A stretch of DNA of 64,000 nucleotides from Zygnema circumcarinatum SAG 698-1b (GCA_037447605.1 CM074804.1:1116001-1180000), one strand, 5' to 3'; counted from the stretch's first letter, positions 30,450 to 46,795 are shown. Numbers and translations: made by a program. Notes: a model not told the origin generated them from the sequence alone.

Positions 30450-33400
30450 ATGGCGGGCAGAGAGGGAATGCTCCTGCAAGCGAGGGGCCACTTGCCGGAC
30501 GGCATGGCGACCACGTGGAACCAGGGGAGGAGGGCGCTTGCGTATGGTGAGGGGGCGTGTGGGGCGGGGGTGAGGGAGGGAGAAAGTTGGAAAGGGGGAG
30601 GGAGGGGAGGAAGAGAGGGGGGTTGGGAGGAGGGAGGTTCGAGGGGAGAATGGAGGGTGGCAGGGAGAGGGGGATAGGGGGAAAGAGGACGAGAGGAATG
30701 GAAGGAGGGGGAGGGGAAGGGGGAATACCGAGACTTCTGATTATTTAATGGGTTTTCGTGCAGGTCTACGGAATTTGAGTCTCTCAAAGAGTGTGAAGCT
30801 TCCTGGAAGCTGTAATTTCCGACGTCCGCAATGCAGCATTAGAGCAATTGTGGAAGGCGGAAACTCGGTTTCTGTTTCAGGTAATGTAGCAATGTACCAT
30901 GTCTCGTTTTAGTCCTAATATTTAATCTTTATATTTGTAGTTTAAGTTAGCTTACCTTTGGTTTCGTCGCTGAAATGATATATTTGTTGACCTAGCTTAA
31001 AACTAGGTTTCTATGTGATGGTTGTTTGGGAAGAAACGGCTAAGGTACAGGGTCGTCTGTCCCTCCGCCTCCCCCTTCCCCCCTCGCCCCTCCCCCCTCC
31101 CTTCCTCCCTCCCCGGTTGCGTACGAAATAGCCAGAAATTTTTATAACATTTTAGTGAGGGGTGATGCGAGAAGAAATTAATTTAGAGAGGGAACATCAG
31201 AGAAAATAATTGTTGTGGATTAAATAGAGTGTGCTGCAAGAGCGAGAGGAGGGAAAGTAACAAATGGAGTAGAAGGCGGAGGTGAAGTGGGAGAGGGAGG
31301 TTGGAGAGCACGGGACATGGGGATTGGAGAGGGAGAGGGAGACGGAGACGGAGGGGGGGACAAAGAGGGAGAGGGAAGGAAGAAAAAGTGAGAGAAACTG
31401 TGGATAAGGGAGAGGGGGCGGGAGGAAGGAGGAAATCAGAGTGGGTGAATGAGAGAATGCTGTACGATAATCAGCGAAATAGCGACACCTGGAGGAGGGG
31501 GGGGGAAGAGTGAGAGAGAGAATAGGGAGAGGGAGAGACTATACTTCTCAACCAACCAGCAAGGTCTGAACCACTAATTCTAGTCTGACTCCTAAGCTTT
31601 GCCTAACCTTTCACTGAACCCTAACTCTCTTCTAACCCTAATCTTGAGATCTCTTAACAGTGACTCTGGCACCCTAACCCAAACCGCGACCTCATTTCTC
31701 ATTCCAATTCTCCACCCCATACCCTGATCCTAATCCGTCCCTTATTTCAATCTTTTTCCCTTCCCTTAACTCGGTCCGCAACTAACACCCTAACCCTACT
31801 TAACACTAATGTTGCTCCTTGCAGACGCAGGTGCATCATCCTCTCTCACAATGGAGCTCGCAGCTCCCCCACCCACCATGAGCAGAAGCTCTCCTCTCCC
31901 TGCAGCTGTGGGAGTCTCCCTCCTCGCCGCCGCGGGAGCAGCTCTCTATTACAAAAGAGGAGCCGCCACCTCAACAACTTCCCCCCCAAGTACAGAAGCT
32001 ACTTCCGCAATCGAGACAAGAATTCCCCCTCCGAGTAATCCGATGCCCCCTCGCGTTGTCTCTGTTGTAAGTTGATCATTACTTCTCTCCTAAACCTGCG
32101 CAGGTCTGCCTTTGTTTTTTGATTGAAAGAGAGAAAAATCCTTCGGTCGACCAGGAAAGAGTTTAAACTTACATTGTCTTGTGGTGCATTGGTGTATTTG
32201 TTCTTTCCCCCCTGTTCTATGCAGGCCGCTCCGGCGGCGATGAAGACAATTGCGCATTATTTCCCCAATTCTATGCAGGACGAGAGCTTTATAGATTCCG
32301 TTGCTGGGGAGCTTTTTAAGCTTGGGTTTAGCAGGCAAGTGGTAAATCACTTTCTCTCTCTCTATCTATCTATCTATCTATCCTTCTCCCTCCCTCGCTC
32401 CTTCCCTATCTCCCTCCCTCCCTCCCTCCCTCCCTCCCCTTCTCTCTCTCCAGCTCCCCCTCTTCGCTCCCTCTCCCCCCAGCCACTCCCTCCCCATTGT
32501 GAGAGGAAAATGCAGACAGCAAATTTTCAAAATCGCAAAAGATTAAAGAACAGGACTAACATTGCTATAACCTCTTGAAATTCAGTGTGAAATATATATA
32601 TCCATTTTGAGAGAGGGGGGGTGTTCTGGCAATGCAGGGAGAACTGCATAGCCCTCGTCTGCACATGCAGAGACGAAGTGAGCGCCTCTCACTTTTCTAC
32701 ACACCCCCAAACCCTAACTTTGCAAACCCTAACCACATCTCGAAAAAAAAAACTGAAATCCACAATCCTCTCGAACCCCAATGCCTAATCCAACCGCGAC
32801 TCGTCTTGCAAACCAACGTTTCATGCAATATCCTCAATGCACTTTTAACTATTATAGTTTGTAACTCCGCACTTAGTCCCTTTCCTTGCAATCCAATGTC
32901 AGGTGTGCCGGCCGTTGGCGTGGTACATCGACCGGCGGTTTGGGCTCTCGTTCAACATTGCGGGCCTTGGGGGGCTCATCGGCTGCGGGAAGACGGGGCT
33001 CAGGGCGGGGATGTCCCATAGCCCCGAGCTTCCCTGCGATGTGGACGGACGCTCGCGGGAGAGATGTCAGTCTCTCTCTCTCTCTCTCTCTCTCTCTCTC
33101 TCTCTCTCTCTCTCTCTCTCTCTCTCTCTCTCTCTCTCTCTCTCTCTCTCTCTCTCTCTCTCTCTCTCTCTCTCTCTCTCTCTCTCTCTCTCTCTCTCTC
33201 TCTCTCTCCTCTCTCTCTCTCTCTCTCTCTCTCTCTCTCTCTCTCTCTCTCTCTCTCTCTCTCTCTCTCTCTCTCTCTCTCTCTCTCTCTCTCTCTCTCT
33301 CTCTCTCCTCTCTCTCTCTCTCTCTCTCTCTCTCTCTCTCTCTCTCTCTCTCTCTCTCTCTCTCTCTCTCTCTCTCTCTCTCTCTCTCTCTCTCTCTCTC

Positions 33401-44908: not shown

Positions 44909-46795
44909 TCACACGACCTGCAGGTCATGCTTTTGGCCTCGAACCACGGCATACATCGTTCCAGGGTAGACATAGTCGACAAGACGATCAGGCCTGAAAG
45001 GTCCTCGAGAAGCCTGTAACAAATCATCGGAAATAACAGAGATAACTTAAGAATTCGATTTCATTACCTTTTTCCATGTACTTCTATGACTTGCTCCACT
45101 TGTGTTGTAGAAGCACAGTTTTAAGAATGTCACGGGGTTAACGACGAAATTCGCAGAGAATAATTAGCCAAATACAAGAGTCCCTTCCTCAAATCTACAT
45201 AAGAATGTACCTGATTGCTTGAGTGGATCTGAATTCCGGTGATAACTGCATAGTCCGCTGTCGCAGGATTCACAGTTTTCTGAATCAGGCGCTCCAAATC
45301 TTCCGTGATGACCTGCAACAGAAACCGAACGCCACATCAGCCATTTGATCAAGTCAAGTCTTTCCTTAAGCATCTGCAAACTGCAGTGATAAAGCAATTG
45401 ATTAGCAAGGAGATTGCTTCTTCAGCGGCAGAACTTTACTTTTTTAAGCAGCTTGTACCTTCATAGCTGTCTTGGTTATATCCGCAAGGCTGGTCTCCTG
45501 TCCCCCGCAGTTGTTGCAGGCAAGCTGCAATATGTCAGCAAACAGACCAGTCAGCTCCGCAATTGAATGGCCCTTCACAAATTGCAGCTGCTTTTGTAGT
45601 CCACAGCATTACCTGTGAACGAATTTTCCTTTTCAGCATAACGTATTCCATGTCGTCTTCATCATAATCCTTCTCGCCTGCATTGGCAGCATCTTGCTGG
45701 ATCGCTATCAGTGCTCCGCATGCATGCGTTGGATTCTCACGACCCTGCCGCAACAGTGATCCAAGCTCGCCTGCCGGCCCAACTGCCACGTGAGGAAATG
45801 CGAAAAATACATCTGCACATGTTCAAACAAAACGTACTTTTAGAAAAATCAATTCATGCAAAACCCTCCCAAGATAACTCCACAATACAACATCAAGTGG
45901 CAAGCCAAGAAGTTGAAGTCATGTATTAGTGGACGGAACAAAAGGCTCCTTGAAGAATCGAGCATCTCACATCTCTCGATGGGCTGTGACTCGCCGTCAC
46001 GCTTGCATTGAGGGCTGTGCGACATGCCCGCTCGCAGGCCTGTTGTACCACAGCTAATAAGCCCTCCAAGGCCAGAGACATTGAAGGAGACGCCGAACTG
46101 CTTGTCGATGCAAGTTGCGAGAGGACGGCAGACCTGTAAGCGACATATGATCACGTCAGTCGCGAAAGTGAGCACTCTGCTATGAGATGTTCGCCTCCAG
46201 AGCGCGGCCGAGTAACAATTCAGGTACAGAAATACATCAAAACAGAAACGTTTGGAACGTGCACAAATGTGTCTACTAGGACGTACCTCATCCCGGCAAG
46301 TATTTACAAAAGCGATGGAGTTGTCCCTGCAATTTCAGCAAGCATAGAACCAAAGAATATCATTAAGTCAAAGTGTATGGTCAGAATCAGCAAGTCCTGG
46401 GGCAATTCACCTCCACAATGAACAGAAAGTTTCATATAGGCTTATCAGATTAGTTTTTGTCAGCGTTGATGTCATACAAGTCCTAAATAAGCAACTAACA
46501 TTATTATTTGGCTATTTCCACCGTACCAATCTCCTCACCTATTGAAATCCCAACCAGCAAGCTGCTGTGCAACAGCTTCCACGAAGACTTCATCCCGCAT
46601 AGAGTTAGAAAAGTTTTGTGAAATAGATTCCAGAGCAGCAGGGGTAGCATGGATCGCGTTTTTCCTCGACGTTAGAGACTGCATATAATACAAAAAATCG
46701 CTCTCCTCTTGCCCCTTATTAACCAGCGAGAAGGAGCCAGGCCTCTGCAGTTGAGCCATGCGGTACATCCCCACAGTTTCCATGGAGCCAGCCAT
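44909..46795 (-). CDS. LCIB: LCIB/LCIC-family protein 2, no evident transit peptide
   Basis: Exons 46795-~46540 (MAGSM...NFSNSMRDEVFVEAVAQQLAGWDFNR), ~46325-46286 (DNSIAFVNTCRDE), ~46135-45972 (FGVSFNVSGLGGLISCGTTGLRAGMSHSP), ~45810-45614 (YVFFAFPH..HACGAL), ~45528-45460, ~45315-45212 (ITEDLERLIQKTVNPATADYAVITGIQIH) and ~45015-44909 (TGA). Same intron positions as paralog 1. Confidence 0.88.

Follow-up and report, generated by a model that had tools for sequence, protein, structure and literature searches.

Organization of the locus

A 64,000-nucleotide (nt) stretch of Zygnema circumcarinatum SAG 698-1b DNA (GCA_037447605.1 CM074804.1:1116001-1180000; hereafter the window, with positions counted from its first letter) contains two genes of the LCIB family, one predicted to encode a protein with a long N-terminal head and the other a protein that lacks it. 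Both are complete open reading frames (ORFs) with introns, their exons having been joined by script from the window sequence. Paralog 1, on the plus strand, is a predicted model of 10 exons (coding extent 30450-35286; 1311 nt, 436 amino acids (aa)), and paralog 2, on the minus strand, has 7 exons (46795-44909; 933 nt, 310 aa). The stop codons at 35286 and 44909 are separated by 9.6 kb, and the genes are convergent, which agrees with a preliminary description of the sequence that placed them tail to tail about 10 kb apart; strict adjacency does not stand, however, since a three-exon set of ORFs intervenes (Table 1).

Table 1. Coordinates in the window of the two LCIB genes and of the features between or within them.
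Feature	Position	Strand	Evidence
Paralog 1, exon 1 (start codon, transit-like region)	30450..30546	+	Model only: ORF and GT donor
Paralog 1, exon 2 (transit-like region, GLRNLS and CSIRA motifs)	30764..30880	+	AG/GT sites, phase fit
Paralog 1, exon 3 (Gly/Ala hydrophobic helix at about residues 94-115, Pro/Ser/Thr linker)	31825..32066	+	Homology to P0152
Paralog 1, exon 4 (LCIB domain start, residue 153)	32225..32334	+	Homology to paralog 2 and relatives begins at first residue
Paralog 1, exon 5 (CRDE: zinc-ligand Cys199, Asp201)	32638..32677	+	
Paralog 1, exon 6	32903..33065	+	PF18599, 39.7 bits
Paralog 1, exon 7 (FPH His264, Arg278, ACGAL Cys288)	33677..33924	+	PF18599, 47.1 bits
Paralog 1, exon 8	34115..34171	+	Joined model, alignment to paralog 2
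Paralog 1, exon 9	34510..34611	+	PF18599, 28.5 bits
Paralog 1, exon 10 and stop codon	35152..35286	+	Joined model, junction alignment
Assembly gap, 10 Ns	35063-35072	.	Within intron 9 of paralog 1 (34612-35151), CT-rich low-complexity array on both sides
Three-exon ORF set between the LCIB genes (37092-38932)	about 37092-37810, 38085-38387, 38648-38932	+	
Paralog 2, exon 7 and stop codon	44909..45013	-	Contig pieces
Paralog 2, exon 6	45211..45312	-	PF18599, 28.8 bits; RNA joints
Paralog 2, exon 5	45459..45524	-	RNA joints
Paralog 2, exon 4 (His161, Arg175, Cys185)	45613..45812	-	PF18599, 48.5 bits; 5k5w, E 1.6e-8; RNA joints
Paralog 2, exon 3	45971..46133	-	PF18599, 44.6 bits; 5k5w, E 7.9e-11; RNA joints
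Paralog 2, exon 2 (CRDE: Cys96, Asp98)	46287..46326	-	Joints 46325/46538 and 46131/46285, three runs
Paralog 2, exon 1, coding part (unique 49-residue N-terminus, then domain start)	46539..46795	-	Spliced contigs X1, X2, X3
Paralog 2, 5' untranslated region (UTR)	46796..47019	-	Contiguous with exon 1; X1 contig 46538-47019 without joint

Family membership and active-site residues

Searches of Pfam and PDB were made exon by exon, and the joined models were used only for alignments and trees. At a cut-off of 25 bits, PF18599 (LCIB_C_CA) was matched by three exons of each gene (28.5-48.5 bits) at collinear profile positions, and with complete frames in both this upholds the earlier description of two full LCIB-family genes. 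Exons 3 and 4 of paralog 2 also match the Chlamydomonas LCIB/LCIC crystal chains 5k5w (E values in Table 1) and 5b5x, the 5k5w alignment spanning the FPH and ACGAL motifs. Neither PDB nor Pfam gave a match to exon 1 of paralog 2, and the first conserved family column is reached only at residue 62. Aligned with each other over 276 aa, the two proteins show 57% identity (E 8e-107).

The putative zinc ligands had been described as retained, and the Cys-His-Cys set is indeed present in both proteins: C199/C96 in CRDE (paralog 1/paralog 2), H264/H161 in FPH and C288/C185 in ACGAL, in columns that are 100% conserved in 97 relatives. Other invariant active-site residues are also kept, namely D201/D98 (CRDE), H241/H138 (SHSP) and R278/R175 (after FPH), and the invariant His and Arg would correspond to His162 and Arg194 of the Chlamydomonas protein. 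In the 97-member alignment, conservation reaches at least 90% in 38 columns, all of which are kept by paralog 1 and 35 by paralog 2. Judged by sequence, both loci are intact genes for predicted LCIB-type (theta / beta-like) zinc carbonic anhydrases of the zygnematophyte type.

Transcript and start codon of paralog 2

Transcript contigs of three RNA runs (X1, X2 and X3, from two studies) were placed on the window at 44200-50100, where they inform on joints and continuity and not on transcript start, strand or expression level. The six introns of paralog 2, all GT-AG, are exactly spliced out in contigs of all three runs (CT..AC on the plus strand, equal to GT..AG of the gene), and since the introns are precisely absent the contigs derive from spliced RNA. 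Paralog 2 is transcribed and correctly spliced, and the concern of the preliminary description that one copy might be unexpressed is removed for this gene. In X1 a single contig of 1590 nt spans 44476-47019, and the 3' UTR extends to about 44269-44476.

Exon 1 of paralog 2 is unspliced over 46538-47019 in X1, which carries the transcript 224 nt past the ATG and through the TTTCAG (46825-46820) that had been proposed as a candidate acceptor at about 46820; that site is passed unspliced by the RNA contigs and is therefore unused. The 224-nt leader (46796-47019) contains no ATG, in-frame TAG and TGA codons stand 4 and 3 codons ahead of the start, the start-codon context is good, and no splice joint between 46795 and 49381 was seen in any of the three runs. 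Because the leader is contiguous, free of ATG, closed by in-frame stops and without an upstream joint, the first AUG of the main paralog 2 mRNA lies at 46795, only 49 residues ahead of the domain, close to the 50 or so of the preliminary description. A missed upstream coding exon that would supply a transit peptide was looked for and does not appear, the leader being contiguous and interrupted by stops in frame. A tblastn search with 19 head regions likewise found no relic LCIB head exon at 46795-49000, and elsewhere low-complexity noise only.

In X2 and X3 one contig extends unspliced from exon 1 of paralog 2 (46538) over the whole intergenic region and reaches the 3' exons, themselves spliced, of the histidine-kinase gene upstream (joint 49381/49713). 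In X1 each of the two genes has a contig of its own, and 47020-48168 is left uncovered between them. The continuous contig of X2 and X3 suggests read-through transcription or overlapping transcript ends.

The N-terminal heads

The region ahead of the domain was compared with that of 21 relatives, 18 of which, from Klebsormidium, Mesotaenium, Closterium and transcriptomes, are long-headed (83-191 residues). One head architecture is common to 16 of these 18 and is found in paralog 1 as well. It begins with a transit-like region (often with GL(R/K) and a V-R-A site), followed by a FASVS-like motif, a Pro/Ser/Ala stretch, a Gly/Ala-rich hydrophobic helix preceded by about 30-130 residues, and a linker that ends in a basic residue and gives way to Ala and an AAPAAL-type domain start. 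The long N-terminal extension claimed for paralog 1 is borne out at 152 residues ahead of a domain start at 153, in a model whose exons 1 and 2 are placed by splice sites and motif position only. Exon 3, which carries the helix, aligns to the N-terminus of P0152 with a local score of 161 against 47 ± 7.7 in 500 shuffles, none of which reaches it (0/500), and with a tblastn E value of 9.6e-16.

Paralog 2 has none of this. Its hydropathy maximum over 19 residues is 0.13, as compared with 1.61 at residue 94 of paralog 1, and no segment homologous to the P0152-type helix was found in it, so that the Gly/Ala-rich helix that marks the membrane-anchored streptophyte subtype is present in paralog 1 and absent from paralog 2. 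Its 49 N-terminal residues resemble those of no relative compared. Homology to paralog 1 and to other LCIBs starts at residue 50, which is the equivalent of the first residue of paralog 1 exon 4, that is, of the exon 3/4 boundary.

Shared introns, phylogeny and origin of the copies

Position and phase are the same for introns 4-9 of paralog 1 and the six introns of paralog 2, as the statement of common intron positions had it. Homologous exons have lengths of 40/40, 163/163 and 102/102 nt (paralog 1/paralog 2), and the remaining pairs of 248/200 and 57/66 nt differ by in-frame indels. The introns of paralog 1 are GT-AG throughout save intron 4, which is GC-AG with a perfect donor (AG|GCAAGT at 32335); the frame is kept by this GC donor only, and GT donors nearby break it. 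Introns are much sparser in the LCIB genes of Closterium than in either paralog, and the shared introns therefore signal common descent and are no universal feature of the family.

In Closterium sp. NIES-68, residues 1-227 of P0164 and 1-269 of P0160 each fall within one exon by tblastn, and the idea that an intron at the head/domain boundary is universal is ruled out by its absence there. These two LCIB genes (P0160, 441 aa; P0164, 398 aa) share one orientation at BQMA01001038.1 6156-11283, with 1.3 kb between them; tblastn resolves each into only 3 to 4 exon blocks, a single one of which holds the head together with the first half of the domain. Tandem LCIB pairs, as this example indicates, are common in Zygnematophyceae, and their gene structure differs.

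No identical protein was found for either paralog in the libraries searched, the best identities being 72-78% for paralog 1 (P0152) and 63% for paralog 2, and the closest library proteins are from Zygnematophyceae (Closterium, Mesotaenium, and Logan and EukProt transcripts) and then from Klebsormidium. A careful maximum-likelihood tree, built from 46 domains, some of them representatives of unknown taxonomy, has P0152, a Logan transcript of another species, as the sister of paralog 1 (support 100/98), whose exons share 72-83% nucleotide identity with it. Paralog 2 is the first branch inside the zygnematophyte-type clade (97/92), on a terminal branch of 0.75 changes per site that is the longest (median 0.13). 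In an approximately unbiased (AU) test, a clade of paralog 1 and paralog 2 is not rejected (p 0.17). It would appear that either the copies are old or paralog 2 is fast-evolving. Of the duplication originally proposed, common descent stands by virtue of the introns; the tree, in which the two genes part, gives no support to a young local event, although the AU test still allows them to be sisters. Since 35 of the 38 conserved columns are kept despite so long a branch, the alignment argues for purifying selection on paralog 2. The simplest reading of the gene structures is that a partial copy or an exon loss, with its break in the pre-domain intron, left a domain that would have recruited a new leader and start codon.

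Proposed locations and alternative explanations

The best overall explanation, to which a probability of roughly 0.55 is given, is that paralog 1 encodes an anchored chloroplast protein and paralog 2 a headless, soluble and most likely cytosolic one. Paralog 1 would be a canonical streptophyte pre-protein that is imported into the chloroplast and tethered by its helix to a chloroplast membrane, by analogy with the hornwort LCIB, which is membrane-bound at the chloroplast envelope, overlaps or co-localises with TIC40, and has been proposed to hydrate incoming or leaking CO2 (10.1101/2024.06.26.600872; 10.1101/2024.06.24.596764). Anchored in this way, paralog 1 would hydrate incoming or leaking CO2 to bicarbonate. 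The earlier assignment of this protein to the plastid stroma agrees with the chloroplast-type head as far as the plastid is concerned; a simply stromal protein is not what the hydrophobic helix suggests, which fits the envelope-bound hornwort LCIB.

Paralog 2 would be a 5'-truncated relative that makes a soluble LCIB domain without anchor or canonical transit region, because its homology starts at the equivalent of exon 4 and its leader is contiguous with in-frame stops. As the whole targeting and anchor module is missing, the cytosol is the most likely place for it; a cytosolic location is plausible on these grounds and takes about one half of the odds, with about one quarter going to a soluble stromal protein and the remainder to other fates. 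In the cytosol paralog 2 would equilibrate or trap inorganic carbon ahead of the chloroplast. Both locations are presumed, as are enzymatic activity and a role in CO2 concentration. A more specific scenario, in which a truly cytosolic carbonic anhydrase encoded by paralog 2 and an envelope-anchored protein of the paralog 1 type form a two-step CO2 trap (cytosol, then chloroplast membrane) in a close algal relative of land plants, paralog 2 having arisen by a partial duplication broken at an intron and shorn of the targeting and anchor exons, is tentative and falls clearly short of even odds. The literature searched yielded no account of a green-lineage LCIB outside the plastid.

Several points weigh against the pairing of an anchored chloroplast enzyme with a cytosolic one. 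Paralog 2 is changed at three highly conserved positions (P63S, G83D and S182T), and recombinant Chlamydomonas LCIB and LCIC have no carbonic anhydrase activity in vitro (PMC5876011), so that intact ligands are no proof of activity. The three changes might be expected if paralog 2 were a transcribed but decaying or functionless duplicate that became headless through partial duplication, as might a branch that is the longest among the zygnematophyte-type LCIBs compared and a best library identity of 63%. Such decay is nonetheless very unlikely: a frame of 310 codons is open over 7 exons with canonical splice sites that are all used, all catalytic and ligand residues are kept along with most conserved columns in spite of the long branch, the start context is good in a UTR without upstream ATG, and the contig depth, a rough guide, is of the same order as that of the neighbouring gene.

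The short N-terminus of paralog 2 is a further difficulty. The absence of a recognisable signal is no proof of cytosolic location, the Ser/Thr, acidic and basic counts in the first 30-50 residues are indistinguishable from those of relatives with real heads, and the protein has up to 49 N-terminal residues, about 25 beyond the crystallised Chlamydomonas core (5k5w offsets), that could act as a short transit peptide or presequence. The claim that paralog 2 has no clear transit peptide stands for the conserved head, which is absent; composition does not tell its N-terminus apart from real transit regions. Short transit peptides do occur in the green lineage, and were the unique N-terminus one of them, paralog 2 would still be a chloroplast protein, a soluble stromal LCIB as in Chlamydomonas that may act beside the anchored forms or assemble with them, as LCIB does with LCIC. 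The presence of one acidic and three basic residues among the first 28 and the resemblance in Ser/Thr content to the transit regions of relatives would suit this, as would the LCIB and theta-carbonic anhydrase localisations in the literature consulted for comparison, all of which are plastid-associated (stroma, lumen, envelope or periplastidal compartment). Against this, the head motifs of relatives (GL(R/K) and FASVS-like) are missing, Glu6 and an E30-E31-D33 cluster are untypical of a transit peptide, and only about 25-49 residues are there to serve as signal, which makes a stromal paralog 2 unlikely, if a serious contender.

The last of these points concerns the start of paralog 1. An in-frame ATG lies at 31809, 16 nt 5' of the exon 3 acceptor, with a stop at 31791, and if translation began there, or at Met81 or Met90, in or just before exon 3, the N-terminus would be mis-modelled and the helix would become an N-terminal signal anchor, with entry into another membrane system instead of transit-peptide import. 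Neither exon 1, which is model only, nor exon 2 has significant similarity to any relative, the alignment score of exon 2 being no higher than that of shuffles. Nevertheless, most long-headed relatives have a substantial stretch of sequence before the helix, their GL(R/K) motif and V-R-A site line up with exon 2, exons 1-3 join in frame at AG/GT sites, and CCAAT-like boxes stand immediately upstream of 30450, so that a start near exon 3 is quite improbable. No in-frame ATG lies farther upstream of 30450.

Comparison with other LCIB-family proteins

That Klebsormidium and hornworts have LCIB has been in print since 2020 (PMC8075897), and many zygnematophyte LCIBs are already in public databases, unnamed. 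Paralog 1 has the LCIB_C_CA domain and head architecture in common with streptophyte LCIBs such as Klebsormidium nitens KFL_002100040, Mesotaenium ME000627S08833 and many from Closterium. It differs from them in sequence, with identities of at most 72-78% (P0152) and of 50-69% to named species, and in carrying an additional Gly/Glu/Arg insert within the variable loop that follows ACGAL. This insert derives from a GGGAGA-type repeat in exon 7 (33806-33880) and could vary in length from strain to strain. The envelope-bound location of the Anthoceros agrestis LCIB is one that the helix of paralog 1 would explain, the likeness being one of published location, as the heads compared were those of algal relatives. 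Paralog 2 differs from the streptophyte LCIBs in that the whole head is missing.

Headless forms occur elsewhere, since P0157 (307 aa, from a EukProt transcriptome) and Closterium P0181, P0193 and P0195 are short-headed, with 0-65 residues before the domain and no helix, like paralog 2. The tree places them apart from paralog 2, however, and their N-termini are unrelated to its own. Some of the short-headed Closterium and EukProt models may be truncated, and an RNA-supported 5' end is available for paralog 2 only. No paper describing the hydrophobic helix of streptophyte LCIBs or a headless LCIB was found, in a literature whose coverage was incomplete. A search of representatives also brought up chains with two LCIB domains (P0018, 866 aa; P0028, 774 aa) and a much longer fusion (P0011, 1092 aa).

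LCIB and LCIC of Chlamydomonas reinhardtii (5k5w, 5b5x) belong to the same family, with the same Cys-His-Cys zinc site and the same proposed role, the hydration of CO2 to trap inorganic carbon. Those proteins are soluble, stromal or peri-pyrenoidal, and have a transit peptide and no hydrophobic helix, whereas here one copy would be anchored and the other appears to have neither transit region nor anchor. The split into LCIB and LCIC is specific to Chlamydomonas, and paralogs 1 and 2 are not orthologues of one each. In the theta-carbonic anhydrases of diatoms and chlorarachniophytes, which belong to the same family, N-terminal changes redirect the protein to other compartments, with Pt theta-CA1 in the thylakoid lumen and PPAP12 in the periplastidal compartment. 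These are distant in sequence (PtLCIB4 has an E value of about 0.07 against one exon), and their hosts have secondary plastids and other targeting systems.

Implications for the CO2-concentrating mechanism

LCIB, together with a bestrophin channel and a lumenal enzyme of the CAH3 type, is regarded as the minimal chassis of a biophysical CO2-concentrating mechanism, which may date to the land-plant ancestor and is a target for crop engineering (PMC8075897; 10.1101/2024.06.26.600872). The position of LCIB decides whether it aids such a mechanism or short-circuits it. One locus here offers two natural variants of one enzyme, with and without the targeting and anchor module, and the headless one is clearly transcribed. 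Should the headless form be cytosolic and active, the streptophyte model would gain an extra compartment, and a ready-made soluble and anchored pair would be at hand for localisation and engineering tests; should paralog 2 be stromal or inert, the locus would be an ordinary member of an expanded gene family. The pair is solid and experimentally useful, and there is no mechanistic surprise in it until localisation is shown.

Neighbouring features and sequence variation

The ORF set between the two genes encodes a Glu/Lys-rich, coiled-coil-like protein that is unrelated to LCIB, and a Pfam scan of it gave no significant match. The assembly gap in intron 9 of paralog 1 is flanked by exons 9 and 10, both of phase 0, whose junction (...HSGNQ|IPGKPF...) aligns without gaps to paralog 2, P0152, P0151, P0155, the Mesotaenium protein and one Closterium protein; a gap of two residues falls shortly before it in the Klebsormidium protein. 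Because the junction aligns gaplessly to these relatives, the gap is judged to conceal no coding sequence.

The intergenic region carries a minisatellite at 41509-42474, with about 138 copies of a 7-nt unit (GCAAGAA / CTTCTGG type) and a 21-nt super-period. Downstream of paralog 2 there are also direct repeats of about 75-80 nt in two pairs, each with near-identical members (about 43370-43450 and 43980-44060; about 40610-40690 and 43765-43840). They are rich in CCACGTGGC (G-box-like) motifs and may be what is left of a small repeated element. Most of intron 6 of paralog 1 is taken up by a (TC) array with about 231 copies (33071-33532).

At position 44666, in the 3' UTR of paralog 2, X1 (the 2019 study) has T where the window and the 2024 runs have C. 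Most X1 contigs are 95-99% alike to the window rather than at least 99%, and X1 is on this account probably another strain.

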